Assembly (NCBI GenBank): GCA_022605425.2 | Contig: CM061256.1 | Span: 62,001 to 126,000 of the forward strand | From: Hamiltosporidium tvaerminnensis FI-OER-3-3 | Taxonomy: Eukaryota > Fungi > Microsporidia | Length of the DNA: 64,000 bases | Direction of reading: 5' to 3' | Part shown: piece after piece, positions 916 to 55,819 of the stretch | Layout: each line of letters starts with the position of its first letter | Position numbering within the stretch: the first letter of the stretch is position 1 | Made by a program: the position numbers and the translations under genes | Notes under the pieces: generated by a model | Seen by the model: only the letters and a program-made list of their open reading frames with translations | Database searches by the model: none | Told to the model about the DNA's origin: nothing

Positions 916-1128
916 AGCCTTTTATAAATACAATGATTTATTTTTAAAATATAAGATTGGTAAAGTAATTATACGAGTGAAATATACCAATATAAAGCAA
1001 AATTCTATTTTCTATTCTTAGTTTTATTAATATTACTTACGAATTTTAAGAAAAATATTTTTATGAATTGTAAAGAAATAATTATTTTTGATTCCTAAAA
1101 AAAAGTAAAAGATTTAAATCCCATTTTT

Positions 1129-1818
1129 TTATTCCAAATATTTTTCAGCCTCAACAGAGAAAGTTTTTCCATCTTTAAGACAAAAAATATCTACGTTTTC
1201 TTGATTCAATGCCCCACTTTCAGGATGTGCATTTTTAAGAGCTGCTATCCCGACACGTATAAGTCCTTCCAAATCAAGTTCATTGAGACTATTCACCTCA
1301 CTTTCTAGGATGGTACGCGCAGATTGTGACCTATTTCCTATGCTCATAGCATGTGCTTCTCTTATACGTCCAGTTGGTTCAAACTCAATAAGTCTAATAC
1401 CTTCTGATTGTGTCATAAGTAAACCACTCACCCCATACAATCTTGTACCAGAATACATCGTTCTAAATGAAGCTTCTACACACAAATCATCAAAAACAGA
1501 CAAATGACTTATATTTCTATCTCTTATAACTTCTTCAGAAACACTTTTTTTGATTAAATAATCTACAATTTCTAATCCATCATTTGTAATTCCAGAAAAG
1601 GTAAAAAGTGAAGAATCATTTATTTTATAAACTTTTTTGTTGTAATATGAAATATCATTTAACTGTCCTTTATAACCTATCATTACACCACATTCATTGT
1701 TTTTTAGTGCGATTGAAACATTACCGAGCTCAACTGTCTTTTTTATGTAATCGAGCGGCTTTACTTTTCCTTCTGGTGTAAATACAGAAACATAGTTATA
1801 ATCTGTTATTGAAGACAT
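1129..1818 (-). CDS. PRE5: 20S proteasome subunit alpha type-1 (alpha6)
   Basis: N-terminal SVFTPEGK alpha-subunit motif, GTRLYGV, and AMSIGNRSQSARTILE (cf. PSMA1 AMSIGARSQSARTYLE). GACCCTTAA precedes the ATG and the stop lies within AATAAA. Confidence 0.92.
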   Translation of the reverse strand: MSSITDYNYVSVFTPEGKVKPLDYIKKTVELGNVSIALKNNECGVMIGYKGQLNDISYYNKKVYKINDSSLFTFSGITNDGLEIVDYLIKKSVSEEVIRDRNISHLSVFDDLCVEASFRTMYSGTRLYGVSGLLMTQSEGIRLIEFEPTGRIREAHAMSIGNRSQSARTILESEVNSLNELDLEGLIRVGIAALKNAHPESGALNQENVDIFCLKDGKTFSVEAEKYLE

Positions 1819-2787
1819 TTAAGGGTCACTTAATTTGTTTTATCACAAAAAGAATTTTTAATGTTTTGATTTGAAAAAAAATGTAACTTTTTTAGGAAAA
1901 AGAAGTAGAAATTATTTTATAGAAAAAAATAATTTTAAATAAAAGGGTCTGCAACAATCCAAAGGAATGAATGTTACAAATATCAAAAGAAAAATACCAA
2001 AAAAAAATTGTAAGTTGTGAAAATTCCATTTATTTATGTTCTCATTGTTACCACCTTTGGTTTGACTCATAATTTCAAAGTTATTTATTTTAGAATTTTG
2101 CTCAAATTATAAATCCTTTAGAAATTTAATTCTGCTTTTTTGGCTGTTAAAATTTTAAGTTTTATTTTTTGCATCTTAAATGCCTTGGCTTCTGATTATC
2201 TTTGCTGCAAATTTTTAATGAATGTGTAGACTTTTGTGGTTTTCAGTTCTTATCAAGATGAGTTCCTGTCTTTTTTATTGTTCATTCATTAGAAAAAAAA
2301 ATTCGGATGTTTTTGTAGGATTTTATACCGTATATATATGCTTTATTCTTATAGAAATTCGTACTTCTTAAGTTATATCTCATAATATTTAGTTACAAAA
2401 GTTTATATGTTTTCTAAAAATAGATTATTGTTGCATACAAAGTATAATTAAGACACAATATATATACCAACACGAAAAAATTTCTTTTTGACTTAGCAAA
2501 TCATAGGCAAATCTTTCAGAGTTATTCAATATGATGATCCTTATTTAATCTGTTTTTTATCTGAAATACTATAAATGTTATTTTCCCGAATTTTGACTTC
2601 GTTTAACTACAAAAGATCATTTTTAGCGTTTTTTCAACAGAGTAACTATTCTTGTGAATTTGGATTTGTATTTTTTAATGAGAAGTAAATGATTAAGAAA
2701 ATTACTACATAATGTCGCTTTCATATTATAGCATTTTTTCACGTAGAGTCACTTAATTATCTGTGATATTATTTATATCCCAAAGAT

Positions 2788-3522
2788 TTAATAGTAGAGG
2801 GAGGATAATCACATAAAAAGCTTTCTGCTCGGCAATGAGTGTAGCAAACTGATGAGAGGATCATTGTTTGGATTTTTGGTGGTAATAAAACCACACTACA
2901 TTTTCGGTTGTTCCATGGGAGTTGTTATGAGTAGGAAAGGTCTAAGAAATGTCGAAAAGTTTTCTATAAATTTATTTGTAGTTTTCTATGTAACTAGATT
3001 GCAGATCGCAGCTGAACATGTAGGTAATTGCTATGTAAAAACATGGAAACCTAGCCTTGCTCACTCGGGTTAGAAGACTTACCGCCTGGGAGACATAAAA
3101 ATAAAAATCAAAAAAAGCCGAGAGAGCTAAGTATCAAGTTATACCTGTTGGTATGACATTGCACGGTCTAGGTAGACCCCATGTAAATCTCTGAAATATA
3201 TCTTAGCTAGAAGTTTATTGGGTTCAGAAAGGGTAGAGTAAGTGGGAATGCTGCATAGTCTTGGGGAGCCTAGGGTAGGTCTCAACCTAAGATACCAATC
3301 TATGCAACGGACACCATCGAACTTTTGATAACTACCTGGCCATTCAATTAGGTTCTACATACTGGGTAGATGAAAGGCTTTGCGATGTAGGTATTGCAGG
3401 GGGTACTGATGGAGTGGTGTGGTAGCAGTTTTTTGGTTAAATCTAGAACTACATTAGTGTGATGAAAACAAATAAAACACTTGCTACTATTTTTAAAAGA
3501 TGTGATACTTATAAATAAAGAA
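2788..3522 (+). mobile_element. ~735-bp non-coding dispersed retroposon-like repeat (copy 1)
   Basis: Perfect 13-bp flanking direct repeat ATATCCCAAAGAT at 2775-2787 and 3523-3535. A-rich end (ATAAATAAAGAA). GC-richer than its flanks. Homologues at ~19075, ~37140, 53177 and ~61670. Confidence 0.8.
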
Positions 3523-5227
3523 ATATCCCAAAGATATAATATTTTTATTTAATATTTACAAATAAGAAGAAGGGTCTGTCATATGAATATAACTAATAAA
3601 CATAATTATTTTAGTTTTAAAAACAATTCTATACACAATAACAAAGGAACGGGTAGCAGATAGACGATTTCTCTGTAGATACATACTCCAAACCTAGCTG
3701 CCTTCCCGAAAATTTCGTAATCATCAAAAGCTAGTTTAGCATTCTACAGTTTTTACATATTACCTCTAGCTTTATAGTAAATTCATCTTAGAATATACTA
3801 AAATCTGATAATTGCGTATCTCAATTTTTTCTCACCTAAAATATTTTGATTTTCCACAAAAACTCACTAGCTCATCATTTCTACAAAAATATAACTTTGA
3901 ATATAATTTATAAATTTATTTTTGTCATACAAAATTGTTAATTTAAGCTTTTTTAAAGCTCATAAATATATTATTCTACCTAAAATAAATTAGCTGCAGA
4001 AAGTTTTTTATTATTGAATGCATTTTATTGATATTTACTATGTTTATATTTTTATTCTTCTAGTTCTTGTATTGCGCGGTTTTTTATACAGTGCAAAAGT
4101 AGCATAAGACTATATTTATATGGTATTTACCACTTTTTAAGTATAGAAGGCATGTTTTCGGTTTTATGAATCACGCTCTTGTATTCTTATTTAAAAGTGA
4201 TATCTTCTTTGTATATTAAACAAGTCATGTTTAATCCGGATATGTGTAATCTTCTAGTTATAATCGAGTAATCATATATTATACTTATATATAGAATATT
4301 TTATGTTAATAGATCAGATGATATTTTTTTGCATTTAATGACGTACGAAAAAGTTTCTTGTGTCTTGATATGAGTTTATTCTCCGCTAGTAAAATAAACT
4401 ACAAGTTGTGTATGAATTAATATCATGCTCAGATATAGTGAAATTGTTCTCTCGAGAGGAAGATCAATATGTTTGTAACACATTTAATCGTAGAAGTTTG
4501 TTCTAAACATTTCTAAAGAATACCTCTTTGACTAAAATCATTTTAAGTGTCATCCGAGCAATGCTCGCTTCTAAAGATCGAAAAATGCTTAAAATAATGA
4601 TTATCATGAAATATTTGATATTTAGACTTTTTTAGAGGTAAAATTTATCATGTTTATTTTTATTTACTATTTTCTAAGAAAACTTATACATAATAAAATA
4701 AAAAAACTCGGATTTTCTTCTCTTGTAGAGTCTTATTAAAGTACTAAATTCATTATTTTTTATGATCTTCAAATATATCACTTCCGTTCTTGCTATTGAA
4801 GATATAATAAATTTCAGGATCTAATCAGATAAATAAAAATGATCATTATATTTTAATACATACAAATAATTTCGATAAAAAATTAAATTGAAAAATGACA
4901 GATGACTAAAGTCTAATATTATTTTTATACATCTTAATTGATTATAGTCCTTGTCTTTTCAGTGTCATTTCAATAAGAAATTTATTCATTAATTTTATTT
5001 CGTAATTGATCTTAAGTTATATTATTTTTAGCAAATTTCTCGATATAATAGAAAGTATTAATTGATTATTAAAAAAAATCTATAGATTCTGAAAGTCGAA
5101 TATACATGGTTTTAATTTGAGAATAAAAAAAGCAAATTATTATTTTAAGTTCGAAATAAAATAAAACTTTATTTAAAATATATTTCACAGTAAAATATTT
5201 TTGCTGGAAATAGGATACCACTTTTAA

Positions 5228-6872
5228 GATTTAGTTATAAGATCCTGGGTTAACAAATTTTTCTTTTAAATAATTCTTTCCACCATTTCAATCACTTCTA
5301 TCTCTTCCTTCAACTTTAGCTCTTCATTTGCATTAATTGATGGTTCCTTTGCTGTGGTTACGTCATCTAAAATAAGGGGTAAAATATTTTTTCAATTATC
5401 TTGTTTAACACTATCTTCCTCGTTCTTCAATTCTTTTAAGGAGGGTGTTGGCTGTTTATGCATCTCAGCTCCTATAATAACACTCAATGAAGCTCTCTCC
5501 CAGCTCTCTTCGGCACTTGGTCCTGACTCAATTCCTCTTCGTCGATCAAAAGAAATTGTTTCGACTTTCTTCTTGAGTACTATGGATTGTATATATGCCT
5601 CTACATTCATAAATATCTGTAGTCTTTTAACATACCTCTTATAGTATTTTTTCACAATACCGTCCAGCTCATCACATAAGGAATTATCTTTACACTGGTT
5701 TATAAATAAGACTTAGCTCATTTGCTAATAAGTCATACTTCATAGGCTTCTCTGTTTCAACCATTTGAAGAGAGTCTTAGGAAGTTATTCCTACTTCAAT
5801 ACGTGTTATCCTATTCTTCTTTTTGTCCAAAATAAATATGTCAGGTCTTTTATTCCGAATTTTAACATCAGTTTTTATTCTGATGTCCACTCTTATCTCT
5901 GCAGATTCATTATCAAGAATTTCTTGAACTGAGTGACTCCTAATTCGTTTCTAAAACTTAAACTTATATTTATTCAGCAAGAGTAAATGTATACATCGTA
6001 TCACTTCATTATGTCGTCTAGTATAGTCATGACAAAGAATTTTTTCACATCTCGTTGCTAAGTGATCAACCGTTTTCCTAGACTGGTTGCAGTGTTGACA
6101 CATACCTTCTGCACCCCAGACTCATTTCTATCCTAAATGCAACAGAACACTGCTTCATCACGTAGTGTTACACTTCATTTCTTTAACCATCTTGAGGAGT
6201 GATTTAAACTTACCAGCTCGTTATTTCTAGCGCTATATAACTTTGAATGTAGTTTTTGGGTTTTAATTTCGTTATAAAGGTTAGCTACTTGAGCTTCTTC
6301 CGATTTCTTTTTTGGGACTTCCTCTTCCAACCCGTATTTTATTTTTAAAAAGTTTTTAATTTGTGAAAGGTGGGTTTTATTATTATTCTCAAGCTTTAGG
6401 ATTGCTGCTCTTCTGGTCGATGTATCTTTATGTTTTTTTAAAGAATCTAAGAGTTGCAAAAGCATATGTTCGCTTTTGAACTCGACACTAGGCGAACCTC
6501 TTCCAAGTGCTTTACGTGGAAGGTATAGACGTTCTTTGCGTCCTGGGCGTAGATGTATTTTGTTCTTTACTAACACTGCACGCACCGCATCATCTAACTT
6601 AGAGAAGCCAGGCGGTTCTAGTCGGAGTACACCTATATGATAGTTTAATAAAGAAATTGCACTTTTATTAATGGCTTGAAATAAATTTCTTGCATTGAAT
6701 CTCGTGCGAAAAAGTCTTTCTACTCGTACTAGAAGTTTAGTCTGTACTTCCTCAAACGACTTACTTTTTGGAATTTCTCTGCTATCTTCTATAATTTCAA
6801 GGTATTTATAAACACATATTCCTTCAAGAAGAGTAGCAGTATCTTCACAACATGGATCATTAGTGGCTGACT
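5228..6872 (-). mobile_element. 5'-truncated, disrupted R4/Dong-type non-LTR retrotransposon
   Basis: 12-bp TSD TACCACTTTTAA at 5216-5227 and 6873-6884. Carries the RT C-terminus and ERLYLPRKALGRG (ORF 6175-6585), CQHC...DHLATRC knuckle, RRHN and RPD endonuclease motifs, with stops and frameshifts. Confidence 0.9.
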
Positions 6873-9633
6873 TACCACTTTTAAAAATTATAATACTGTA
6901 TAATAGTGATAATATTAAAATCGTTTTAAAATATATTAAGTTAGAAAAATTATTGGAATAGATGGTGCCTTAAAGAGATTGATATATTTTTTAAAAAACA
7001 TCATAGACATTAATTTGATATAAAAAATTTTGACTTTCAGTTTTTATAAAAACTAAATGCAATTTTCAAATAAATATTTATTTGATTCTTTCTTAGAAAT
7101 TTTATTTGTCTTGAAAAGAACTACCGAGTATTTTGAATTTATATAATTTAAAAGACGTTTTTGAAATATAAAAATAAAGAAACAAAAACAGAGAAAAAAG
7201 CAAACATACAAAACGGAAATAATTTATAAACTTAAGATATAGTTTTGGAATCTTCTATAGAAAGATTTATTCATATAAATTATAAACGTATAAATATTTT
7301 ACTAAACACTTAAAACTAGATCAAAAAAATACTAAAACTGATTTTTTTAAATTTCTGGTATATTAGTGATTTTTGATAATATTTTTACTCTTTTTTCGAC
7401 CCTTCAAAAAACCGAGATTAGTCTTCTGTGACAAATCTATACATAAGCGGTAAAGAAAACTAGAATTTCTTTTAAATTAATTCTTAAAATTTTAACATTA
7501 AAGCCTTCATACTTTTATGTAGAATGCGTAGCGTTTTAAAATTTACTAATATTATACAAAAAAGACCCAAGAGAATTCTGCAAAAAGAATTTAAACGATG
7601 TCTAATGACTATATGTAAAAAATAGGCCAAAAACATATAGAAAAAATTTAATATCCTGTAACTATCAATCTGGGACTCAATTTTTTTTATAATCCATTCA
7701 TCATACCTTAAACTAAGGTTCTAATAAATCTTATGAATATTGAAAGCCATATTTGCGTTGCCTACAGTTTCTTTCATGCTAAAAAAATTCAAATGGAGAG
7801 ATATATTAATCTAAAATGCATTTATTCATGTTTATACTCAGCCAAAATAATCACTTAATATTAATTTTATTGTTCATCAATGAAAAATTGATCTATCCAG
7901 ATCTTATCACGAGGTAATAAAACTACCTCGAATAAAACCTTTGAATTATGAAGAATATTCAAGACCTTGATTACCATTTTTATACATTTACTTGTTATAT
8001 TCGGGTTTTATTTATACAGCATCTTTTCAATTGTTTTCATAGAAACAAAATATACTTAATCCGATTAAGGTTTAGAAATTTAGAATATAATTCAATAATG
8101 CGGAAAATGATTCTTGAAAAACCATATTAAAATAGGTTGACCTATAGAGGAGTTTTCTTTCTTCAAAATATACTCAATTATAACTTTGTATTAGATGCCG
8201 ATTCATATGAATTATTAGCATAGAACAACATTTAAGCGATGCAGCCAATGATTATATTTCTTATCTGAAAAAGTCACTGCCCATTATATTGTAGATATCC
8301 TTAAAGACTATACATCCGAGCTTACATTTTTTTTATTATACTGTCAAATTCAAGCCTTTTGAAAGTAAGACGGCAGAGTATTGTTGTGTATACTCTCTCC
8401 AAACCTCACCATACTAAACATAAAATTATATTTAGAATCTTTAATTTCACACCATTATTAATATTTAGAAATTTTATATTTTGCCAAAAATGAATGAGTA
8501 CAGGTTTGGTTTTGCAGTGGAACTCTGAGATGGAAACAGAATTTTGCGTTCTCTCTAAATATTTCGAATATAAATATTCACTATAGTATATTTTTGCAAT
8601 CCCAGGCAATGATTTTATACGATATTTTGCTGAAATTCGACAAAATCTGGGCAACTTTTTGTTTGGGGATAAAAAAAAAAGACTTTCGCATTATGCTTTC
8701 AATTCTCTCTATATTAAACGAAATTTATTGTCTTTGTAATATTATACACATTAGAGAAAGACTTCCGGTAGTTTCATGTTTTTTCTAACTAAATACTTTT
8801 CTTAAAAAAAATAGATATAATAATTGTATTGTTAATTGTAATTCGAGTAGGTTAAGGAATATGGTATTTTACTCAGATGTTTATAATATGATATTTAGTA
8901 TAGATTATAAACATTTCCAATCTTATTGGCCAGAATATATACAGAAAGGTTTTATTGCCCTAATGAATTACTTTGCGTGAATCTATACATAGAATTGCTC
9001 TCTGTGATATTTTAATTTATAATTAACTGCCTCGTAAATAATTCTAATCAAAATTTTTTCTTTATCTTTCGTACAAGAAAGTTTGCGTTAGACTGAGAAT
9101 TTGACCAGTCAAATGAAAAATGTCTAAGTAACGCCTAAAAATTGACGCTGCTTTGATTGACTCATAGATTTTGTTCGATCTATAAAGAAAGGAACAAGCT
9201 AAAAAAAATTTAATCGTAACTTATATCAAATGAATGTATAAAATACTTTAATTTTTTAAACTAACGTTATTTTATTGAAAAAATGTAGCTCAAAAGCATT
9301 TTGCTGAATTTTTAAATTTTAACTAGATGTTTTGCATTTATATTAGGCAAGTAACATATAGAATTTAATAATATACAGTGTGGACTTCTTCCGCCATAAA
9401 AAAATATATTTTTGATGTGTGTACATATGAAATTAGGTATTTATATATGAGTTTAATATTATAGTTTTAGTTTTGAAAGGATCAGGGTTGTATATAGCAT
9501 TTTTTTGATCATAAAAAATCTATGAAGTCTCTGATTACCATCTCTTTTATCATAAAAATAGAACCGTTAAAAATGAATCAATAAGGAAAAAGAAATAACT
9601 TTTAACGCAAATTTATTAGAACTTGGTTCAGAT

Positions 9634-11235
9634 TCATGTCAATAAGCTTTGAATACAAAGAATTCTCATTTTTAGTATATAGGCATCAGTAAATATGCCT
9701 GAATTTAATCTCACATTCATGTTATATCGTAAAAATATATGATATTTGTTTAAAGTTTCAAAAATTATCTTTTTTATGTCTTTGTCTTTAAGCCTACTTT
9801 TTATACGTTCCTTAATTTTGATAAAATAATCAATATAACAAGTATAATCGCTTGAGGACAAATTTATGTATTTTTTGAACGTCTCGCTTTGAAATAATTT
9901 TAAATAGTAATCTATGAATTTTAAAGATTCATTAATTGAAAAATGTTCAAAGTCATATTCATAACTCGTTATCAAAGGCCGTACGACATCAGACTCATTA
10001 TTTCTATAAAAGTAACTTTCTAAATATTTTTTCGTTTCCACATCAAACAAAAATACCAAATCAAGAACACATTTTAAAATAATATTTTTGGTATATTTAC
10101 CGCTAATAAAATCATTATGCATATAAAAACAGATATTAATAATCAGCTTGCACATTATTTTGCCTTCATTTGGAGAAAGAAGTAAATTTTTGATCAATCG
10201 AATTGTATATAAAACTTTTCTTAAATCATATCTTACTTTTTTTAATATTTCGGGACTCAATTTGTATTCTGTATATTTAGAATTATAATTGTATAAAACT
10301 TTCGAATTTACAACCGGAAAACTTAATGAAGGACTTTGCAGTATTATTTCAATTGTTTTTAATCCATAAAATATACTAGATATGGAGATTTCTTTGATAG
10401 GCTTTTTAGATATTTGATCGAATATAAAATCTTTTAAGAAAATCAATCCAGGGAAAAGTGACAATATAGGACAATTATGTCTTGCAATCTCGATGCATCT
10501 CATTCTTTTGATTAAAGATTCGGAAATACACTTAAAAAAAGCCTCACATTTCAAATCTTCTTTCATTTTCTTCTCAATCACATTCAAACATACAAAAACA
10601 AAGCAATTGCTTTTAAAAAGAGACTCCAAATCAAAATTTTGTTCATCAAAATTTTGTTTCTTAAAACACTCAAAAATGTTTTCAATTTTTTTAAAAAGGT
10701 TTAATGGATTTTGAATGTTTTCATTACCATTGCACATCTTTATTATATATTTAAAAGCATAATCGTGGCTAATATTTATTGGTTTTTTAGTTTTATTGGT
10801 TTTTACACCAATACTACTTTCGATGTCTGTGTTATGTGTTTGATTTGTGATTGTTTCCAAAGAAGATGTGTTAATGTGAGGCTGATAAATGTATGAAGGA
10901 TTTTCGGAACAGTCTACAAAATAATCAATGGCTATTGGAATATCAGAATCATGTGAAATATAAAATTTCTGTGAAACCAAAACACAATCAGATATGCTCA
11001 AAATATAATGATTAGGAGGATTACAACGATTTTCATTTTTTGAATCAGTTGTTTCTGGATGCTTACGAATCGAAAATTTTTTATCCAAATCATTTCCGAA
11101 AACTGTAACAATCAAACGGCTTTTCAAACCGTTTTTCGTTTTTTCTAAGTCTGTTGATAACTCCGAAACTTTATCTTGAACAGCCGTTTTTGTTAGAGAC
11201 CAGAAAACCAAAAAGAAATATTTCTTAAAAAGCAT
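9634..11235 (-). CDS. Uncharacterised lineage-specific ~533-aa protein, putatively secreted (family member A)
   Basis: Long intact ORF. The likely start is the GGG-ATG at 11235 (MLFKKYFFLVFWSLTKTAV), not the TTG at 11295. Shares NCPILSLFPGLIF, LDLVFLFD, KFIxYYL and NSxIFTD with the other members. Confidence 0.85.
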   Translation of the reverse strand: MLFKKYFFLVFWSLTKTAVQDKVSELSTDLEKTKNGLKSRLIVTVFGNDLDKKFSIRKHPETTDSKNENRCNPPNHYILSISDCVLVSQKFYISHDSDIPIAIDYFVDCSENPSYIYQPHINTSSLETITNQTHNTDIESSIGVKTNKTKKPINISHDYAFKYIIKMCNGNENIQNPLNLFKKIENIFECFKKQNFDEQNFDLESLFKSNCFVFVCLNVIEKKMKEDLKCEAFFKCISESLIKRMRCIEIARHNCPILSLFPGLIFLKDFIFDQISKKPIKEISISSIFYGLKTIEIILQSPSLSFPVVNSKVLYNYNSKYTEYKLSPEILKKVRYDLRKVLYTIRLIKNLLLSPNEGKIMCKLIINICFYMHNDFISGKYTKNIILKCVLDLVFLFDVETKKYLESYFYRNNESDVVRPLITSYEYDFEHFSINESLKFIDYYLKLFQSETFKKYINLSSSDYTCYIDYFIKIKERIKSRLKDKDIKKIIFETLNKYHIFLRYNMNVRLNSGIFTDAYILKMRILCIQSLLT

Positions 11236-14200
11236 CCCTAAAAATTTTTTATATTTTTTATATATTTTTTCTAAATAAGTATATAATTTTTTCAAAAAAA
11301 TTTAAAACGAATAATTTCCTTTATAGTGTAATTAAATATAGCAATTTGAGATATTTTTGATCTATTTTAGTAAACTAATAATTCAGGTTAAAACTTGTTT
11401 TAAATATTAAGAACTCTATTTTAATCATACATAGAATAGAAATTGCAGAATGTGAAAATTCAAGCGATATTATTGATCAAGAATAATAACACTATTCAAA
11501 AATTTATTTTTAAATCATATATTCTCAAAATTTATAAAATGATTTAAAAAATTCCAAAAAAAATAATAAATTCGGGTGATCAAAATTTAATTTATCTTCA
11601 TATGTACAAATTGAATTAATTCTAGTTAAATTGTAAAAAAAGATAATTTAAATATTGCATTTATGGTATTATACGAAAAAATGAACTAAATCCTAATAAA
11701 TTATATATTTTTTTACTACTAACGCAGAACTATAAATAGATATAAATTTATTTCAAAACCTTTAATTGAACCTCAAATAGGAGTTCTATTTTAAGTTTTT
11801 TACATTTTCTAGATTTTATAATGAATAGAATATTCATCTAGTTAAGATCTCTATTACGGCTTGCGACATAATATAGTTATCCGGTCTGCCACAATTTTTT
11901 TTGTAGAATAGGTTTTTTTCATTTAGAAAATAAAACAAATATAAATATATTGTATAAAAAAATTAGATTATTAAAATTGTAATTATGTATTTGTATTACA
12001 AAGAAAATTTATTAAATTTCAATAATTTTTTTTAAAGATTAATGATATTTTTTGAAATTTTTACTAAAAACCAAAATGAAATCACAAAAAATTTATGTCA
12101 TACATTATTACTAGTGAGATTAATGTAGTTAAGATTTGCCACTATTGATGTGTTAAAATTTTCGGTTAACTTTAGCAGTAGAAAGTATCAATAATGACTT
12201 CAGATTCTTATCTATTAGGCTAAAATTGTAAATTTTTTTGTGTATTTCATTTCAAAGAATTTTTTTCACTTGAATAATTAGTGCATGATGGCACAAATAA
12301 TTCTTATGAAAATTTATTAACACGATTGAATCACACGGTCTTAGAATCTTTTAAAATCCTCGAATTTTATTGAATATTTTTATTTAAAAATATCGATAAG
12401 ATGCATTTTTATCTTTTTGAACGAGAAATGGTTGTTTAAAATTTTATTCAAATTCAAATCATATAAACACAAAGAAATAATCATAGCATGTTTTTATAAA
12501 ATCTAGTAGGTTTTTGGCACTCGAAACTTTTTATAAAATTCATTATGACAGAGGAGCTAAAAGGTTTTAAGACTCTAAAATATAGTATAAGTTTTTATTA
12601 TACTTAAAGTAAATCTTTATAAAATCTAAATCAGTTGAGGAATTATCGAATTTAATTTTTAACGCTGTTAAAAAATAATAGAATGTAACAAATACGAAAA
12701 TACTAATGAAGTTAAAATTTCTTATTTTTAGCTGTGTACTAATACGGATAATAGCAAGAAATATTTTTCATATCTTAAAAGGTACTTTCTTTAAAATACG
12801 ATCACTTAAGATTTCGATAAATGATTTAAAAGCGTACAAAATGTTAATTAATTTTCATTATAAACAAAGTTTAAATAAAGAACAGACGATGCAGAGATAT
12901 ATTGATTTTGATTATGTTTTTTCTTCTATTTAATCTTATTTTATATTACATATAGTCTAATTTAAACTTGTATAAATCGTTGAGATATAGACTTTGGATC
13001 GTCACTATTATATAATCAACATAGAATCAATAAATTCTTCATTTTTGTTTCTAAAAATTTTATCCTTTGAATTTCGTCATTATTAAATATTTACGCTTCA
13101 TTTAGAGTCTTCTTGATATCACATTCCAATTTATATAAAAGAGATGAGTAAACTTGATTCCGATAGTCAATTTGTATATTATTTGTGTTTAGATCCTGCT
13201 GTTAACATATATCTTCATTTTATTGGTTATAACATCCGTGAAATATCATCAAACTTATAATATTAGAAATTTTCGAAAAAATTTCAGTGCTTAAGAGCGT
13301 TTTTCGATTTTTATTTAAGTTAAAATTCTTTTGTATTTTAGTCTAAATAATTCGAAGAAAAAAAGTAAAATTTAGACTTGGTTGAGATTTTCAGTTTCAT
13401 TCTCATTAGAAAAATCAAATAAAAATTTATTTTTTCATTTGAAGATTTGTTATATTTCAATTTTTGACAATCCCGCGTACTTATTTATGAATTAAAACAA
13501 AATAAAGACACTTTGTTTCAGTTTTAGACTCAAACTGTATTAACCTTCCCGAGTAAGATGCATATAATATCTACACGATTTTTGTGCTTGATATACACTG
13601 CCATGACTCTTAAAATTTTATTTAGACAGTGTTGTAAAAAATCAAAAATGATCTAAAAGGCTACATAATTATAATGAATCTATAATGTGATTCATGGTTT
13701 AAGTGTATAAGATAAAAGTTAGGTCCTTAAAGCTAAATTTTTATGATTTAAGTCATCTGACTATTTGATTTAAATTAAAGCTATTAAACTCTGTTCTGTC
13801 TAAATTTTTAGCGTTTGAATTCCCGAGTCGTTTTTTTAGATATTTGAGACAAATATACCAATATTTTACTATGATGTGATTTTTAAGTTTTGATATTCTG
13901 CTAGTTGTCCGCTTGACTCTGATTTCTTAATTTCTTAGGTATATATAAGAGCTAGAATAATTTTCCAAGTTTATATTTGACTACAATACTAAGAATTTAT
14001 AAGTTTTGGAATTTAAAAGTATAAATTTGTACAATAATTCTAAAAAATACTGTAGCGGAATGTTTTATACAACATAAAAATATTATATAACCGATAAACA
14101 TAAATATATTAGTCGAAGTATTATAAATTCAAGGAATTTGATTCCATAATGTGATTAATTCATTATATAAAGTAGCATTAATATATGGTTATAGCGGTTA

Positions 14201-16995
14201 GAATTTTTTCACTTCTCTTTTAAAACGAGTAGGTTTAATGATTTTCTTTTTTAAAAACACTCTCAGGTATATTTAAAGAATGAAGTATTGCCTAGAAGCT
14301 CAAGTGATGTTGAAATACGAACCAGGTACTACTTATATTAGAAAAAAGAAATTTTTTAGTGATAGGTATTGTATTATTTTCTCTATAGTGACTATTTAGT
14401 CAACTTGTTGATATAGGTATGTCATAATTTATTTCAAGAAAAGAATTTATAGTGGAAATATGTTTGAGATAGTTTGTTCTGTGGATATTTTATTTGCGCA
14501 TACAAATGAATTATACGAACAAAAAATATATGAGATTACAATCTACCCAAGGGGTTTTATATTTAATTTGGGATCAGAATCGTTCGATCAATCTGATACA
14601 TAAATTATAACATTGAGGCAAACAAGTAATGACTAATAAGATCATAAGACTCGGTTTAAATGTAATTTATATGAACTGTAAAAATATACTGCTTTTATAA
14701 AATTGCATATGATTCTCATTTAAATTGAAATTCTCATTTGAAAACATATCAGAAAGAGTAGTTCTAAAGATGTTGAAATTTTTAACGGTTTAATTTACAG
14801 TTAAACTACTTTTGAACCTCTATATTCCTCTTCAGATTGTATTTATAAAATTTTCTTTGAGTGCGATAGGTTTTAATGTATATTTATACTTTTATGAAGT
14901 CATAGTTTCGCGATACTTTTAATCTGAACAGATCTATGTAGCTTAGCAAAATCAATTGGTTTAAATAATTTTTATAGAATCTTTTTTCTAGTTCCATGGT
15001 ATAAATTTTAGGAACAATTATTGTTTAAGTTTTTTTGTGTTTCAAAAAATATATTTAGCTTTCTTCGATTTCTAAAGTTTAATCATGGTTTGATAAACGA
15101 ATAATGCAAAATTAAGTGCTCAAAAAATATCAAATAGATTTAGCCGGGTATATAAAATGATGTTTTTTCTGCCTGAATTAAGAAATCCTAGATTTAATAA
15201 AAATAACTATTTCCGATTATTTTACAACACAAATAATTTTTGAAAACTTCAGTCTATAAATGCTTGAGAATATTCTATTTAATGTGTACATACTAATTTT
15301 TTTAATTCAAAGATTATAATTTCTAATTATGTTTTTTACTTTCAGGCAAAGCTTTTCATTAATATTATATTATTTGAGGCAGCAGGAAGCATATTTACAC
15401 TTTTTTAAATGCTAAATGTGTATATCATAGTAATTCAACATTACGACTTAAATGGAATAATAAATAAAAGCATTTTATAGAATTTTATTTCATCTTATAC
15501 AAATATCTTGGTATATTATACTCATGTCTTTTTTTCTTTTAAGTTTCTTTCTAATCACCTAGAATATTCGAAAAAAAACACACATTTTAAACTTTTTAAA
15601 TACTTTAAAAACTTAATATGTACTGAAATTATTTGAAGATTAGATTTCGAGTTTAAATCTTAGTTATTCAAGGTAGCAAATTGGATTGGTTGTGGCAACA
15701 CAATTATTTGCAGATTTATATGCAACATTTTTTAGGTTATGACTTGATTTGATTGCCAATTAAGACTTGCAGATGATTTAATCCATCATTTCTGATATTT
15801 TCTTATTTATAGTATTCTAAGAGAAATATTCAAAAATAAGTAATTCAAAGGAACATGAAAAATTTTCTGGGGATATTTATAAGATTTGGTAGTGATTTCG
15901 ATACAGAATTTTAAATCGTACCGTTACTAATCAAATAAACGGTCTCATATATTTCTATATATTAAACACATGAAACTTCAAAAGAGACCACGGAAATATT
16001 AGCAGTGTTATTCTCAAAACCCTAACTGGGTTGCCATTGATAAGAAAAGCCTGAGCATACAGAGGGTACGACTTTGAAAAAAGTGACCGAATACTGTAAT
16101 TATTTAGATATACATTTATGCGCTTAGAGTCGTTCAAAATATTTTTAGCGAACTATTTGAGGGCGCATTTGGTTCGTCTGTACTGTGAAACATCTTGTCA
16201 GATCGAGTCTCTAGATAATATTTGTTGCGTTTCAATTTTCCAATGACTTTTAAATTTAGTTTTTTTCGATTTAAATTTTTAACTATCAATTTCTAAATGA
16301 AATAGAAATTTCTAATCTAATAGTTTAAAAGAAAACTACAAATTGACACAAAATTTTATAGATCTTGCACGGACTAATTACATTCTTTTTTTTATAAAAT
16401 ACTACTATATAAGCAATATTTTATGCTATATTACATTAATAACAAAGTAAATCATTCTTATAAAAAGATATAAAGCAATTATATTTTTCTAGTAAACAAG
16501 AAATATTTGAGTTTCTAAATCTAAAACTATAACAACATATTGGCTTACAATTTATTCAGTCTAAATTTAAAGCTACGATTAGACATTTGAATTTTTTTTG
16601 GTAATTTTTTTTCTAAAAATATAATTTGTCCTTTTTTAGTTAATTTCGGAATATTTTTCGATTCCTTTTAATTGTAAAAAATTTTATAAAATATATTTTT
16701 TTCTATTAAAGATATATAAAATAATGGCTTGTTTTACTATTTAAATCCAAAAGATGCATTAAAGTATTAAAAATAATTTGTATCTAATTTTTTAAGCGTT
16801 TGATTCTTTAAGAACAATTTTATATTAATTTTTTTAATAAGAAATTACATTTTGCAAAAAATCGAAATTACAAGATTTATTTCAGCATTTCAAAGGAACA
16901 TTTGTGCGCTTCTTGACAAAAAATCGATAAGTTTTTTGTATCAGATCTAAATGGATTTCTTGGTTTAGAATAAAAAGAAAATTAAAATCATAGCC

Positions 16996-18618
16996 ATGTT
17001 TTTTATATCATATTTAGGGATTTTTAGAAATTTTGTTAAATCAGCTATAGAAAGTTTACCTTCCAATTATTATGCCGAAGAATATAAAATAGACGATCAT
17101 ATAAAACGACACAATATTGGTGCATTCTGGTGTGAAGATATTATGGGAACACCAAGCACCTATTTGCATCCAAGTACTACCTTGATACAAGAATTTTTAC
17201 CTTGCAAAGCCGAACACGTTGGTAAGTCTACAGACGAATACTCCATACCATTTTCATATAATGCTTTAGATTCTCATATGGCTAAAACTTCACAAAATCC
17301 AATCCCTTCAAATAATACTCATGCCTACCATACATTATCAAGAATCCCGCGATTTTCAGCTTCGGATTCAACTCAAACACCTTCTTGTATGAATACTTTG
17401 CTAAATATTGATGAAAAAGACACTGAAAACCCGTTTCCCAAAGAAATTCCTGAAGAATATTATTATAAAACAGATCTACAGTGCCAAATTTCTGAGAAAA
17501 TAAAGAAACTAACACAGATTTGTAAACGTATTCGCAAAGATAAAATAAACTGTACTTCTTATAGTGATATTTTATGTTTTTTAGATGACTCATATAGAAT
17601 CAGAAATTTATTTTTGAAAAATATTTTCATGAATAATTGCAAGTTGTTTCGGAAACTAAGAAACATTGAGGCAGGAATGAAAGAATATTGGCAAGATGAA
17701 CGAATATTAAAGGAAGTTGCAGTTATTTTCAAAGCCAGAATAGATCAGATCGAAATAGCGAAAAAAAATTGTGCAATACTATCATTTTTTCCAGGCTTAA
17801 TTTTTATAAAAGATTTCATAAACAAAAGATTCACTAATATGTCATTAAATGAAAGACCTATGATAAGTATATATTATGGATGTAAAATAATCGAAAGTAT
17901 TTTGCATTATGATTCTTTAAAATTTACCGAATTAAATCATTCTTTTGTATATGGAGAGAATTCAGAATATCCTAAATTTCGATTATGCCGCAATTCTTTA
18001 CAAATAACAAAAAATTATTTGTTACAAATTCTTAATATCGTTAGATACATCTATGAAGCCTTAGAAATGCGACAAATTGATCAAAAAATGACCAAATTAA
18101 TAAAATCTGCTTGTTATTATTTAAAGAATGATTTTAGAAATAATAGGTATACAAAAAACATCATAACTAGATCCTTGCTTGATCTGGTATTTTTATTCGA
18201 TGAAGATTCAATAGAATATATATTAGAATACAACTCTGATACGTGTAAATCGGATCTTAGTATATTTCCACTTTTCAGATCGTTTCAACAAGACATAATT
18301 GATTTTTCAGTATTTGAAAGTCGTAAATTTATTAAATATTATTTAGAAATATTTGAGAATAAAATATTCAAAGAATATATCAACATACCCGAACAAAAAT
18401 ATGAACGACACATTTCATATTTGAATAAGATTAGAGAAAATATATCACAAAATCTTACGGATATTGAAATAAATACTATTGCCTTCGAGGCACTGGAAAA
18501 AACTCAAATATTTATACACTATTATATCAATGTAAAAGTAAATTCAATGATTTTTACAGATGAGTACAAAGAGAAAATGCTGGAAGCTTTCATTGAGGAA
18601 ATAAATTACACGGAATAA
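16996..18618 (+). CDS. Uncharacterised ~540-aa protein, same family (member B)
   Basis: Intact ORF with GCC-ATG start and hydrophobic N-terminus MFFISYLGIF. Contains NCAILSFFPGLIFIKDFI, LLDLVFLFDE and VNSMIFTD. The stop overlaps AATAAA. Confidence 0.88.
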   Translation: MFFISYLGIFRNFVKSAIESLPSNYYAEEYKIDDHIKRHNIGAFWCEDIMGTPSTYLHPSTTLIQEFLPCKAEHVGKSTDEYSIPFSYNALDSHMAKTSQNPIPSNNTHAYHTLSRIPRFSASDSTQTPSCMNTLLNIDEKDTENPFPKEIPEEYYYKTDLQCQISEKIKKLTQICKRIRKDKINCTSYSDILCFLDDSYRIRNLFLKNIFMNNCKLFRKLRNIEAGMKEYWQDERILKEVAVIFKARIDQIEIAKKNCAILSFFPGLIFIKDFINKRFTNMSLNERPMISIYYGCKIIESILHYDSLKFTELNHSFVYGENSEYPKFRLCRNSLQITKNYLLQILNIVRYIYEALEMRQIDQKMTKLIKSACYYLKNDFRNNRYTKNIITRSLLDLVFLFDEDSIEYILEYNSDTCKSDLSIFPLFRSFQQDIIDFSVFESRKFIKYYLEIFENKIFKEYINIPEQKYERHISYLNKIRENISQNLTDIEINTIAFEALEKTQIFIHYYINVKVNSMIFTDEYKEKMLEAFIEEINYTE

Positions 18619-19074
18619 AATTAATAAAATAAAATTTGAGTTTAATTCTTCTTTCGCAATTTCAAGATCTAAACAATTGATTCGAGAAATTTTAAATTTA
18701 TTTTGTTTCTTTATATGTTAAAACCAATCGTTAGTTAAACTAGTTATTTTAAATATATTAGTAAGAAATCTTATTATAGATTACCATTACTAAAAATTTC
18801 ATTAAAATATAAAAAAGAACATAATTACGCAAAGAAAATACGTTATATTATTTAGGTTCATAACACATTATATAATTATATTCTTAGATATCCATAATAA
18901 ATATTAAATTTTAATGACATTTTTAAATTAATATATTTTCATTATTGACTGGAATATTCTCGTAAATTTTTTAAATACAAGAAAAATGCCGACAAAATTC
19001 CTTTTTTACATATTTTTTCAGCAAAACCGTATTTAATTAATGCTATTTGCAGCTAATTATTTGATAGCCTTTCG

Positions 19075-37139: not shown

Positions 37140-37860
37140 TATAAAATCTTTTAAAACAGTGGCAGGTGTTATATTTTTTATTGACATTAGCGCAATTCTA
37201 GGTTTAACATGAGTAACTTCCCAACCCCCCCCCCCAAAAAAAAAAAAAAATACATCTGTCCCCCTGCGATACCTACGTCCCAAAGACTTTCATCTACGAG
37301 ATGTGTAGAAGCTAATATTTGCGAGCCGTTACCCAGAGTTCGTAAATGTCCGTTGGATGGTCTGTGATTTTAGATCGAAACACCCCCTGGGCTCCCCAAA
37401 GACTATACAGCAAACTTATTTACTTTACACGTATCGAAACGAAACAAATTTCAGCTAAAGGTAACTTGGGAAGTTATATTAGATATATTAGACAGTAAAT
37501 GCTATACCCACATGTGCAACCTGCTACTCACCTTTTCTGGCCTTAAAAAGTTTTATTTTTAAGTCTCACAGGCGCTAATTCTTCTAACCGAGTTAGCAAG
37601 CCTAGATTTCTATACTTTCAAAGTAATTACCTTGAAGCGAAGCCGTAGTCACAATCTAAGTACATTAAAACTATAAATTGGATTTGCAGAAAAAGATTCG
37701 TCATTTCGTAGACTTTCTCTACTCATAAAAACACCCATAAAATAATCGAAAATGTGTTTGGATTTATTCATATCAAGATTTTATCAATATTTCAAATGTC
37801 AATCATGCATACTCTTTGCCAGGCAGATAGTTTTTCATGTGGTTATTCTCTCTTCACATA
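37140..37860 (-). mobile_element. Diverged copy of the ~735-bp repeat, abutting the inner end of the right arm
   Basis: CCCCCTGCGATACCTACGTC~CCCCCTGCAATACCTACATC, GGCTCCCCAAAGACTAT and TCTTCTAACCGAG match 53177-53911. Contains a C11A15 run at 37225-37250. Confidence 0.75.
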
Positions 37861-38029
37861 ATATCATTCTATAATAAGATTTCTTACTAATGTATTTAAA
37901 ATAACTAGTTTAACTAACGATTGGTTTTAACATATAAAGAAACAAAACAAATTTAAAATTTCTCGAATCAATTGTTTAGATCTTGAAATTGCGAAAGAAG
38001 AATTAAACTCAAATTTTATTTTATTAATT

Positions 38030-53911: not shown

Positions 53912-54870
53912 ATCTTTGGGATATAAATAATATCACAGATAATTAAGTGACTCTACGTGAAAAAATGCTATAATATGAAAGCGACATTATGTAGTAATTT
54001 TCTTAATCATTTACTTCTCATTAAAAAATACAAATCCAAATTCACAAGAATAGTTACTCTGTTGAAAAAACGATAAAAATGATCTTTTGTAGTTAAACGA
54101 AGTCAAAATTCGGGAAAATAACATTTATAGTATTTCAGATAAAAAAACAGATTAAATAAGGATCATCATATTGAATAACTTGTAAAGATTTGCCTATGAT
54201 TTGCTAAGTCAAAAAGAAATTTTTTCGTGTTGGTATATATATTGTGTCTTAATTATACTTTGTATGCAACAATAATCTATTTTTAGAAAACATATAAACT
54301 TTTGTAACTAAATATTATGAGATATAACTTAAGAAGTACGAATTTCTATAAGAATAAAGCATATATATACGGTATAAAATCCTACAAAAACATCCGAATT
54401 TTTTTTTCTAATGAATGAACAATAAAAAAGACAGGACCTCATCTTGATAAGAACTGAAAAACACAAAAATCCACACATTCATTAAAAATATGCAGCAAAG
54501 ATAAACAGAAGCCAAGGCATTATAGATGCAAAAAATAAAACTTAAAATTTTAACTGCCAAAAAAGCAGAATAAAATTTCTAAAGGATTTATAATTTGAGC
54601 AAAATTCTAAAATAAATAACTTTGAAATTATGAATCGAACCAAAGGTGGTAACAATGAGAACATAAATAAATTGAATTTTCACAACTTACAATTTTTTTT
54701 TGTTATTTTTCTTTTGATATTTGTAACATTCATTCCTTTGGATTGTTGCAGACCATTTTATTTAAAATTATTTTTTTCTATAAAATAATTTCTACTTCTT
54801 TTTCCTAAAAAAGTTACATTTTTTTTCAAATCAAAACATTTAAAATTCTTTTTGTCATAAAACAAATTAA

Positions 54871-54881
54871 GTGACCCTTGA
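54871..54881 (+). promoter_or_regulatory. Microsporidian CCC-type motif upstream of the start codon
   Basis: GTGACCCTTGA-ATG following an AT-rich tract. Equivalent CCC/GGG motifs precede the ATGs at 1818, 11235, 36516, 45447, 57868 and 63233. Confidence 0.65.
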
Positions 54882-55571
54882 ATGTCTTCAATAACAGATT
54901 ATAACTATGTTTCTGTATTTACACCAGAAGGAAAAGTAAAGCCGCTCGATTACATAAAAAAGACAGTTGAGCTCGGTAATGTTTCAATCGCACTAAAAAA
55001 CAATGAATGTGGTGTAATGATAGGTTATAAAGGACAGTTAAATGATATTTCATATTACAACAAAAAAGTTTATAAAATAAATGATTCTTCACTTTTTACC
55101 TTTTCTGGAATTACAAATGATGGATTAGAAATTGTAGATTATTTAATCAAAAAAAGTGTTTCTGAAGAAGTTATAAGAGATAGAAATATAAGTCATTTGT
55201 CTGTTTTTGATGATTTGTGTGTAGAAGCTTCATTTAGAACGATGTATTCTGGTACAAGATTGTATGGGGTGAGTGGTTTACTTATGACACAATCAGATGG
55301 TATTAGACTTATTGAGTTTGAACCAACTGGACGTATAAGAGAAGCACATGCTATGAGTATAGGAAATAGGTCACAATCTGCACGTACCATACTAGAAAGT
55401 GAGGTGAATAGTCTCAATGAACTTGATTTGGAAGGACTTATACGTGTCGGGATAGCAGCACTTAAAAATGCACATCCTGAAAGTGGGGCATTGAATCAAG
55501 AAAACGTAGATATTTTTTGTCTCAAAGATGGAAAAACTTTCTCTGTTGAGGCTGAAAAATATTTGGAATAA
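54882..55571 (+). CDS. PRE5: 20S proteasome subunit alpha type-1 (alpha6), second copy
   Basis: 229 aa. Differs from the left copy only by E->D (TQSEG/TQSDG). Confidence 0.92.
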   Translation: MSSITDYNYVSVFTPEGKVKPLDYIKKTVELGNVSIALKNNECGVMIGYKGQLNDISYYNKKVYKINDSSLFTFSGITNDGLEIVDYLIKKSVSEEVIRDRNISHLSVFDDLCVEASFRTMYSGTRLYGVSGLLMTQSDGIRLIEFEPTGRIREAHAMSIGNRSQSARTILESEVNSLNELDLEGLIRVGIAALKNAHPESGALNQENVDIFCLKDGKTFSVEAEKYLE

Positions 55572-55819
55572 AAAAATGGGATTTAAATTTTTTACTTTTT
55601 TTTAGGAATCAAAAATAATTATTTCTTTACAATTCATAAAAATATTTTTCTTAAAATTCGTAAGTGATATTAATTAAACTAAGAATAGAAAAATAAATTT
55701 TGCTTTATATTTGTATATTTCACTCGTATAATTACTTTACCAATCTTATATTTTAAAAAGAAATCATTGTATTTATAAGAGGCTTATATTTTTAAAATTT
55801 TATAATCTAATTAATTTAA

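Follow-up and report, generated by a model that had tools for sequence, protein, structure and literature searches.

Features of the locus

A 64,000-nucleotide stretch of the genome of Hamiltosporidium tvaerminnensis (isolate FI-OER-3-3), a parasite of Daphnia whose sister species is H. magnivora, contains a large palindrome, formed by two inverted arms on either side of a gene-bearing spacer. The stretch, referred to below as the window, covers positions 62,001-126,000 of CM061256.1 (GCA_022605425.2), and the palindrome lies 63-118 kb from the scaffold end. Each arm carries a PRE5-like proteasome gene, the remnant of a dead retroelement and the genes A and B, which belong to one protein family; a third member, C, lies in the spacer together with a decayed fragment of the family (Table 1). 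Scans of the 64-kb window for tRNA genes, Rfam families and tandem repeats were all empty.

Table 1. Coordinates of the palindrome, its genes and neighbouring elements (position 1 is the first nucleotide of the window)
Feature	Position	Strand	Remarks
Palindrome left arm, 17,865 bp	916..18780		Reverse-complement match to 37868-55784, 98.18%
Palindrome right arm, 17,917 bp	37868..55784		Inverted match to left arm; contig L007 crosses 55784
Single-copy spacer, 19,087 bp	18781..37867		Without mirror symmetry; one C-gene variant per assembly
Retroelement copy adjoining left outer junction	1..915		Truncated exactly at arm boundary
PRE5-like proteasome alpha subunit, left copy, 229 aa	1129..1818	-	Pfam PF00227, E=6.7e-25
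Homogenised tract, left arm	4005..8816		Mirror 47883-52694; 2 differences in 4.8 kb
Degenerate retroelement fragment, left arm	5229..6841		Mirror copy 49858-51470; broken ORFs
Family member A, 533 aa	9634..11235	-	Also annotated as 533-aa gene in source assembly
Second candidate conversion tract, 5' 1.2 kb of B/B'	16931..18152		Mirror 38496-39717
Family member B, 540 aa	16996..18618	+	Intact ORF
Decayed further family fragment in spacer	21187..21457	-	Two short tblastn matches to C-terminal part of A/A', E ~2e-7
Family member C, 539 aa, single copy in spacer, tandem with B'	34918..36537	-	Intact ORF
Family member B', 540 aa	38030..39652	-	6 residue differences from B
Family member A', 539 aa	45447..47066	+	18-bp in-frame insertion at ~45631-45648
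Degenerate retroelement fragment, right arm	49858..51470		Mirror of 5229-6841
PRE5-like proteasome alpha subunit, right copy, 229 aa	54882..55571	+	Compared with left copy
Retroelement copy beyond right outer junction	55813..57180		29 bp outside; orientation as left flanking copy
NOT4-like RRM/zinc-finger gene, single-copy right flank	57790..58485	+	Pfam RRM_1, E=1.2e-6

The left arm was aligned with the reverse complement of the right arm; the 17,929 columns contain 250 mismatches and 26 indel events, and a repeat of about 18 kb at 98% identity cannot have arisen by chance; the inverted arms and the spacer of about 19 kb described in a first-pass annotation of this DNA are thus borne out. The homology ends abruptly at all four junctions, and their comparison revealed neither fainter homology beyond them nor microhomology at them. 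When the spacer is compared with itself, mirror symmetry is limited to one internal inverted match of 230 bp at 74%. This locus was not found described in the literature on microsporidian palindromes and inverted duplications.

The two PRE5 copies differ by five synonymous changes and one conservative Glu/Asp replacement (pN/pS 0.05), which points to strong purifying selection. The first-pass annotation had also held that differences between the arms respect codons; this is correct for the 18-bp indel, which is in frame, and almost so for PRE5, where all changes but one are silent.

The retroelement fragments of the arms contain broken reading frames, with a weak, below-threshold match to zf-RVT (E 0.05-0.06), and are 80-91% similar to the copies at about positions 1-915 and 55813-57180 and to others left of the window. 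The copy at 1-915 is an 83% direct repeat of 56021-56851, and the segment matching 56852-57180 is missing from it. On the right side, the order of arm, retroelement and NOT4-like gene is also present in H. magnivora, on contig L007.

A protein family confined to Hamiltosporidium

The five intact members recognized in the first-pass annotation (A, B, C, B' and A') are confirmed by their open reading frames, and the decayed fragment in the spacer is a sixth that it had missed. Pairwise identity is 39% between A and C, 33% between A and B, and 31% between B and C. The family comprises 13 sequences, found only in Hamiltosporidium: a word search yielded two matches, and an exhaustive profile search of 1.84 billion representatives yielded nine, namely six named Hamiltosporidium proteins, two unnamed NCBI fragments and a repetitive 1,112-residue ENA protein, which is taken to be a low-complexity match. 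Pfam searches with all long open reading frames and the 13 family members, up to E=1, gave no match for the family, and neither did a profile search of PDB sequences. The AlphaFold2 model built from the 13-sequence alignment is of moderate quality only (pLDDT 53, pTM 0.58), and the Foldseek comparison of this model with the PDB gave a best E of 0.29 and TM scores of at most 0.17; therefore, no fold is assigned to the family. The H. magnivora orthologue of A carries the automatic UniRef name "Ras-GAP domain protein", which was rejected, since none of the 13 members has a Pfam match at E<=1 and no PDB or fold match was obtained.

According to Kyte-Doolittle hydrophobicity, a single strongly hydrophobic N-terminal segment is present in each of the distant paralogues (19-residue mean 1.8-2.2), as opposed to a weak N-terminal stretch of only about ten residues (1.6-2.1) in A, B and C; further membrane segments are absent in every family member. 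The weak stretch in A, B and C makes them at best putative secreted proteins, and a role in host interaction is pure conjecture.

A and A' differ by 12 synonymous and 18 replacement changes, besides the six-residue insertion in A', and the resulting pN/pS of 0.34 is consistent with moderate purifying selection on A. Neither the left arm nor any of the five H. magnivora contigs has the 18-bp insertion, and the exact A' protein is on record on two contigs. The six residue differences between B and B' are confined to a span of 37 residues (386-422), with a pN/pS of 0.82 obtained from nine changes, counts that are too small to demonstrate positive selection. Conversion from A or C was rejected as the source of this patch, because its residue states match neither gene. 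A cluster of 18 substitutions lies 190-270 bp upstream of B'; its explanation as a micro-inversion was rejected.

Junctions and copy number

The long-read assembly was produced by merging Canu and NextDenovo contigs with quickmerge, followed by manual curation (PMC10542269), and the contigs independent of it derive from Ray short-read assemblies (PMC6944219) of H. magnivora BE-OM-2 and IL-BN-2 and of H. tvaerminnensis FI-OER-3-3. A comparison of isolates had been proposed together with the first-pass annotation, and it recovers three of the four junctions in short-read contigs from these three isolates of two species. The left inner junction is crossed by L003 (BE-OM-2) and L004 (IL-BN-2), the right inner junction by L005/L010 and L006 (FI-OER-3-3) and by L001 (IL-BN-2), which reaches only 117 bp into the arm, and the right outer junction by L007 (BE-OM-2). 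Since contigs of IL-BN-2 cross both inner junctions, the inner end of the arm is present on both sides of the spacer in that isolate. For the left outer junction (915/916) the contig look-up returned the source scaffold alone; its support is the long-read assembly, and it adjoins a repeated retroelement, a place prone to mis-joining.

L005/L010, from the same isolate as the window, are 99.94-99.95% identical to it, and the spacer is collinear with contigs of four short-read assemblies at 99.1-99.95%. The spacer gene C occurs as one variant per assembly, and every arm gene as at least two variants in at least one assembly: there are four A-bearing contigs in BE-OM-2, two B contigs in FI-OER-3-3 and, judging by accession order, probably two PRE5 contigs in BE-OM-2. 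Only two arm variants are found per isolate, a number to be expected equally of two paralogues in a homozygous genome and of two alleles. Apart from one private difference, L006 is a pure mosaic of left-arm and right-arm states. Short-read contigs of near-identical repeats may be chimeric, so block patterns are weak evidence, and site counts are sturdier.

A fold-back chimera of long reads or of whole-genome amplification was rejected: the arms are separated by 291 difference events and a 19-kb spacer, and the same differences appear in the short-read contigs. The first-pass annotation had likewise dismissed a simple fold-back read error, rightly so; its argument from codon-respecting differences, instead, fails to separate paralogues from alleles.

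Probable exchange between the arms and comparison with H. magnivora

The differences between the arms are unevenly distributed. In the tract 4005-8816, identical runs of 2,652 and 2,134 bp occur, whereas a uniform null puts the 99.9th percentile at 731 bp; here, at 202 sites, the two H. tvaerminnensis arms, both read from one long-read assembly, share a state unlike that of the H. magnivora NOT4-linked contig, the other patterns being found at 0 and 3. This tract contains only the dead retroelement and non-coding DNA. In the second tract, at 16931-18152, there is a single arm-to-arm difference, and at 12 sites the arms share a state unlike that of H. magnivora (other patterns, 1 and 1). That these tracts are alike between the arms yet unlike H. 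magnivora indicates arm-to-arm gene conversion.

The opposite pattern is observed elsewhere: at 16730-16809 the left arm equals the left-linked contigs of H. magnivora at 18 of 18 sites, and at 916-2200 the NOT4-linked contig is matched by the right arm at 20 sites and by the left arm at 8, with the proviso that the H. magnivora contigs may be chimeric. The remainder of the arm shows polymorphism common to both species. Concerted tracts beside opposite ones and shared polymorphism mean that conversion is patchy, not pervasive, and we infer that gene conversion may be the cause of the conflicting trees among tracts. The earlier proposal that the arms convert each other thus finds support in the two homogenised tracts and in the conflict between adjacent trees. 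The further suggestion that the palindrome acts as a maintenance cassette does not, because the larger homogenised tract is free of genes and A/A' belong to the segments with higher divergence, so that no maintenance of gene A by the palindrome is visible.

At 109 of 214 sites that differ between the arms, the same two states are found among H. magnivora contigs. With about half of these sites also variable in the sister species, the duplication is older than the split between H. tvaerminnensis and H. magnivora. The divergence of the single-copy spacer between the species is only 0.6-0.9%.

Origin and possible function

The locus is likely, and we hold this with good confidence, a genuine interstitial inverted segmental duplication with a spacer, older than the species split and patchily converted. 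Before H. tvaerminnensis separated from H. magnivora, a 17.9-kb block containing PRE5, the dead retroelement, A and B would have been duplicated, with the new copy placed, inverted, on the other side of a 19-kb segment bearing C. Afterwards the arms would mostly have drifted apart, reaching 2-3% in non-coding parts, and occasional non-reciprocal recombination may have overwritten patches, in H. tvaerminnensis the 4.8-kb tract and the 5' 1.2 kb of B.

Such a structure could also result if the long-read assembler, or the merging that followed, had joined head-to-head the two alleles of one arm in a heterozygous diploid. Duplicated contigs of this genus were reported to have lower mean depth and some were called alleles (Haag et al., PMC6944219), the use of quickmerge and manual curation leaves room for such a join, only two arm variants exist per isolate, and the left outer junction, known from the long-read assembly only, coincides with a repeated element. 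However, the copies have different outer flanks, Pho88 with a nest of retroelements as opposed to the NOT4-like gene, and on the inside each adjoins a different end of the spacer. Short-read contigs contain both inner junctions, even within one H. magnivora isolate, and the switch from two variants to one takes place at the same junction in all isolates examined, in two species; a single arm would require an inversion heterozygote and, anyway, an inverted arm segment past the spacer. The case against joined haplotypes thus relies on independent contigs that span the junctions, not on the codon pattern, and makes an artefact very improbable. Equally remote is a real and recent duplication that diverged plainly, without exchange between the arms, its unevenness reflecting constraint or mutation rate. 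Coding divergence is indeed below non-coding divergence (1.15% vs 1.57%), and divergence is an even 2-3% in the interiors of A and of the A-B intergenic region; yet both inner junctions and the right outer one already exist in H. magnivora, which shares half of the arm differences, neighbouring tracts yield opposite trees, and the near-identical 4.8-kb tract is free of constraint, being made up of a dead retroelement and intergenic sequence, and diverges by 5-6.7% between H. magnivora variants.

An adaptive recombination cassette, in which frequent conversion and flipping of the spacer maintain and diversify putative secreted host-interaction proteins, is unlikely, although less so than the two preceding explanations. 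Conversion tracts do exist, one of them over most of gene B, the family is genus-specific, multi-copy and provided with N-terminal hydrophobic segments, and both the clustering of the B/B' replacements, with their pN/pS, and the substitutions upstream of B' are compatible with diversification. However, the arm identity of 98.2% is far below the near-identity of frequently converting palindromes, A/A' are not homogenised, the main converted tract is without a gene, the B patch has no donor in A or C, and the counts are too few to show positive selection. In Y-chromosome palindromes, conversion has been proposed to keep genes intact in place of sex, and one Hamiltosporidium species is considered asexual. 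By analogy, the palindrome might be a working recombination device in a reportedly asexual lineage: conversion would replace sex and keep PRE5 and two putative secreted-family genes intact, spacer flips would alter the neighbourhood of C, and the patch at residues 386-422 of B, the cluster upstream of B' and the A' insertion would supply host-facing variants, a scenario to which we attach little probability. Most simply, the structure is a neutral product of a drift-dominated, repeat-rich genome; a neutral origin explains every observation made at the palindrome, and the long duplications of Hamiltosporidium have been ascribed to drift (Haag et al., PMC6944219).

Whether the long segmental duplications of Hamiltosporidium are true duplications or alleles has been a question since the first assemblies, and the locus offers a worked example of a duplication that is real and inverted, predates the separation of the two species and has undergone conversion. 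Its four junctions and copy-specific markers provide a PCR-sized, read-testable system for intrachromosomal recombination in an obligate intracellular parasite. In addition, a genus-specific protein family without a fold match, located in duplicated DNA, is defined here; in microsporidia, host-exposed proteins are usually sought first in families of this sort.

Comparison with known systems

Plastid inverted repeats undergo flip-flop recombination, which inverts the spacer and corrects the copies. They resemble the palindrome in having two inverted copies around a single-copy region; however, in plastids the two copies are practically identical and both isomers occur side by side, whereas the arms described here are 1.8% apart and one spacer orientation is known from the assembly. 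The P1-P8 palindromes of the human Y chromosome and those of the X have large inverted arms, with gene conversion from arm to arm. The likeness of mammalian sex-chromosome palindromes to this locus includes inverted arms of tens of kb, a unique spacer, a multi-copy gene family in the arms, an age greater than that of a species split, and non-reciprocal exchange between arms (see also PMC6790999 and PMC11168930). Unlike them, the palindrome lies on a microsporidian chromosome without known sex-limited inheritance, the essential housekeeping gene PRE5 is also duplicated, and the arms show 98.2% identity with patchy conversion, as opposed to about 99.9% or more in Y palindromes.

Closer parallels exist among Microsporidia. 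Long segmental duplications of 0.9-59 kb with at least 80% identity account for 5-15% of the Hamiltosporidium assemblies (Haag et al. 2019, PMC6944219), and the palindrome, from the same genus and of the same size class, is very probably one of them; in that study duplicates and alleles were not separable and no structures were given, whereas here the inverted layout, the junctions and the cross-species conservation are resolved for one locus. In the same H. tvaerminnensis genome, tail-to-tail pairs of rRNA operons around LINE repeats (PMC12449221) likewise form inverted pairs flanking a central segment, with retroelements nearby, but they are rDNA units at five loci, whereas the palindrome duplicates a protein-coding block and encloses a 19-kb spacer with genes of its own. 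The subtelomeric duplications of Encephalitozoon cuniculi (PMC4704409) are also microsporidian blocks with lineage-specific gene families, thought to be homogenised by recombination; those repeats are shared between the ends of different chromosomes, whereas the palindrome lies within one chromosome. The locus is, in conclusion, a new example of an already known kind of structure.

Structure and gene content of the palindrome

The window has a G+C content of 26% and long ORFs are scarce. Its dominant repeat, found by a repeat search and by BLAST of the window against itself, is formed by 916-18780, which is the reverse complement of 37868-55784; these are exactly the arm coordinates proposed by the first-pass annotation, and its observation of near-identical inverted arms around a spacer was confirmed both by the self-comparison and by short-read contigs across three of the four junctions. 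The arms align over 17,929 columns with 98.18% identity, 250 mismatches and 26 indel events; the 19,087-bp spacer is unique except for one 230-bp inverted match at 74%, and at each of the four junctions homology breaks off sharply. Gene B is recorded on scaffold CM061256.1 (676,572 bp) of GCA_022605425.2, so that the window spans about 62,001-126,000 there; no human sequence is present in it. For this H. tvaerminnensis FI-OER-3-3 assembly, Angst et al. 2023 joined PacBio CLR (Canu) and ONT (NextDenovo) contigs by quickmerge and curated the result manually; the assembly paper makes no mention of the palindrome structure (PMC10542269).

Features of the palindrome and its flanks (window coordinates, unless a contig sequence compared with the window, L007-L009 or L012, is named)
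Feature	Position	Strand	Remarks
Left arm	916-18780		
Spacer	18781-37867		
Right arm	37868-55784		
PRE5, proteasome alpha subunit	one per arm		229 residues; Pfam PF00227
Family gene A	9634-11235	-	left arm; 533 aa
Family gene B	16996-18618	+	left arm; 540 aa
Family gene C	34918-36537	-	spacer; 539 aa; tandem with B'
Family gene B'	38030-39652	-	right arm; 540 aa
Family gene A'	45447-47066	+	right arm; 539 aa
Decayed fragment of another family member	21187-21457		spacer
ORF, 183 residues	30530-31081	-	spacer; conserved
Degenerate retroelement fragment, 1.6 kb	one per arm		5229-6841 and 49858-51470; broken ORFs, weak zf-RVT match
Degenerate retroelement copies	1-915, 22254-22923, 55813-57180		window
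Degenerate retroelement copy	about -3240 to -1623		left of window (L012)
Pho88-family gene	~3.4-4.0 kb left of window start		L012; Pfam E=5e-38
NOT4-like gene	57790-58485	+	RRM and C3H-type zinc finger
Lysine-rich ORF, 222 residues	63230-63898	+	right end of window
A-retroelement fused models	L007:3308-9157, L008:3314-8590, L009:1080-5853		BE-OM-2

Outside the left arm lies a nest of copies of the arm retroelement together with the Pho88-family gene, the first single-copy gene past this arm, and a short tandem array of ~80-bp units is found between that gene and the window. The right flank contains one retroelement copy and the NOT4-like RRM gene; the 700 bp upstream of the latter show no ORF for a RING domain, which may have been lost or may be encoded at another place. 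A single degenerate retroelement 3' fragment, in which an RHN motif comes after a zinc-finger motif and which matches zf-RVT weakly, is present at least six times in or around the palindrome; two of its copies, in direct orientation, bracket the entire 55-kb structure, the left one being truncated exactly at the arm boundary. Neither the lysine-rich ORF, whose lysine content is extreme, nor the spacer ORF has a Pfam match; the latter, very hydrophobic in its C-terminal half, has a gene call and is intact in the short-read assemblies of both H. tvaerminnensis and H. magnivora.

The protein family

A word search recovered Hamiltosporidium proteins only, and an exhaustive profile search of 1.84 billion representatives gave nine hits: six Hamiltosporidium-named proteins, two unnamed NCBI fragments and one repetitive ENA protein, which was discounted. 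Distant paralogues occur as tandem pairs on contigs other than CM061256.1, and a 1.0-Mb contig is the recorded location of proteins from two of their clusters. The automatic UniRef label "Ras-GAP" on an orthologue of A is unsupported, because at E<=1 none of the members matches any Pfam family. No PDB sequence match was found for the family, nor any fold match for its AlphaFold2 model (pLDDT 53, pTM 0.58), which comprises an N-terminal helix, a disordered stretch (~37-160) and an all-alpha domain (~160-510). One N-terminal hydrophobic segment is strong in the distant paralogues and weaker in A, B and C, and no further membrane segment is present in any of them; judging from sequence, secretion is plausible, and a role in host interaction is conjecture.

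The apparent diversity of the A cluster is inflated by the annotation of H. magnivora BE-OM-2, which joins the A gene to retroelement-derived sequence via long predicted introns (models of 615-856 aa, one of them named "reverse transcriptase domain-containing"); Haag et al. doubt such predicted introns themselves.

Duplication or mis-joined haplotypes

Long duplications of 0.9-59 kb are known in Hamiltosporidium, and Haag et al. warned from read depth that some of them are alleles (PMC6944219), so that the arms might be two haplotypes mis-joined by the assembler; in addition, the left outer junction (915/916) adjoins a repeat, and no independent contig was found across it, the look-up matching the source scaffold only. 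The other three junctions, however, are crossed by contigs from the four Ray short-read assemblies of the same authors (PMC6944219). H. magnivora PITI01000048 (BE-OM-2; its sequences L003 and L011 jointly cover 9142-37235) and PIXR01000028 (IL-BN-2; L004) pass unbroken through the left inner junction (18780/18781), while the right inner one (37867/37868) is crossed by H. tvaerminnensis PITJ01000097 (L005/L010, 99.95% identical to the window) and PITJ01000636 (L006), and by H. magnivora PIXR01000722 (L001), which breaks off 117 bp into the arm, the usual behaviour of a k-mer assembler that meets a repeat. PITI01000110 (L007) crosses the right outer junction (55784/55785) and continues into the NOT4-like gene. 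Since L004 crosses the left inner junction and L001 the right one, IL-BN-2 carries the inner arm end at either side of the spacer, the two ends being inverted relative to each other.

Variant numbers also speak against a mis-join. The spacer gene C has a single variant in every assembly; A-bearing contigs are four in BE-OM-2, B contigs are two in FI-OER-3-3, and two H. magnivora PRE5 contigs are on record, which, to judge from accession order, may both be from BE-OM-2. In several isolates, belonging to two species, the change from two variants to one falls on one and the same base, as predicted by a two-copy arm beside a one-copy spacer and not by heterozygosity, and a mis-join is very improbable.

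Age, selection and probable exchange between the arms

The inverted duplication is old, and the genes that it has doubled are intact. The two species differ by 0.6-0.9% in the single-copy spacer; counting substitutions, the arms are 1.4% apart as a whole and 2-3% apart in the interval from 9.2 to 16.5 kb. The same two states occur in H. magnivora at 109 of the 214 arm-difference sites for which at least two H. magnivora contigs were available, and these common states, together with the conserved junctions, make the duplication older than the species split.

The codon-respecting differences invoked by the first-pass annotation indicate that both copies are functional sequence, but they do not discriminate paralogues from alleles. 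Between the arms, PRE5 has five synonymous changes and one replacement (pN/pS 0.05), and A and A' have 12 and 18 (pN/pS 0.34), besides an 18-bp in-frame insertion confined to the right-arm copy, A'. B and B' show two synonymous and seven replacement changes (pN/pS 0.82); all six residue changes fall at 386-422 (18151-18261 in B; 38387-38497 in B'), the remainder of the 540 residues being identical. For all these genes the counts do not suffice for a claim of positive selection. Derived states in this patch are found on both copies, and A and C were rejected as its donor, no matching sequence being present in either.

Arm differences are very unevenly distributed. The longest identical runs (2,652 and 2,134 bp, with two differences between them) lie in unconstrained DNA at 4005-8816; the 99.9th percentile of a uniform null is 731 bp. 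There the arms are alike at 202 sites at which the NOT4-linked contig of H. magnivora is unlike both (the H. tvaerminnensis side being the window arms alone); H. magnivora variants are 5-6.7% apart over the compared segment 6500-9100. The same pattern is found in the 5' 1.2 kb of B (16931-18152), with 12 arms-alike sites versus 1 and 1. Directly upstream of B (16730-16809), the left arm agrees with the left-linked contigs of H. magnivora at all of 18 sites, and at its outer end (916-2200) the right-linked contig of that species is matched by the right arm at 20 sites and by the left arm at 8. Such opposite trees in adjacent tracts would be the signature of gene conversion over an old duplication. 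Site counts rather than block patterns were relied on, because the short-read contigs are visibly mosaic and may be chimeric: L006, from the same isolate as the window, is a block mosaic over its match to 45982-37261 (51 left, 120 right and 1 private state), and so either a chimera put together from both copies during assembly or a recombinant arm carried by the homologous chromosome.

The substitutions between the arms at 16730-16809 (mirror 39840-39919) are 18 in 80 bp and lie 190-270 bp ahead of the start codon of B and B'. Their right-arm version is confirmed by L006, and both H. magnivora contigs carry exactly the left-arm version; a micro-inversion was rejected, and no donor sequence was identified.

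Origin and comparison with known systems

The abrupt junctions, and the retroelement cut short where the left arm begins, suggest that the structure arose close to a retroelement by break-and-repair or template-switch and not by recombination of the two flanking copies, whose orientation is direct. Arm-to-arm gene conversion has probably been patchy. The adaptive interpretation of the first-pass annotation, in which crossovers would flip the spacer and the locus would act as a maintenance and variation cassette for host-interaction genes, is only partly supported.

Very probably, the locus belongs to the "long segmental duplications" left unresolved by Haag et al. (PMC6944219). Tail-to-tail rRNA operon pairs around LINEs have been described before in the H. 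tvaerminnensis genome (PMC12449221), and the palindrome is a new, well-resolved example of an already known kind of structure. It works like the mammalian sex-chromosome palindromes with a spacer and like the inverted repeats of plastids, but homogenisation is far weaker here than in either.
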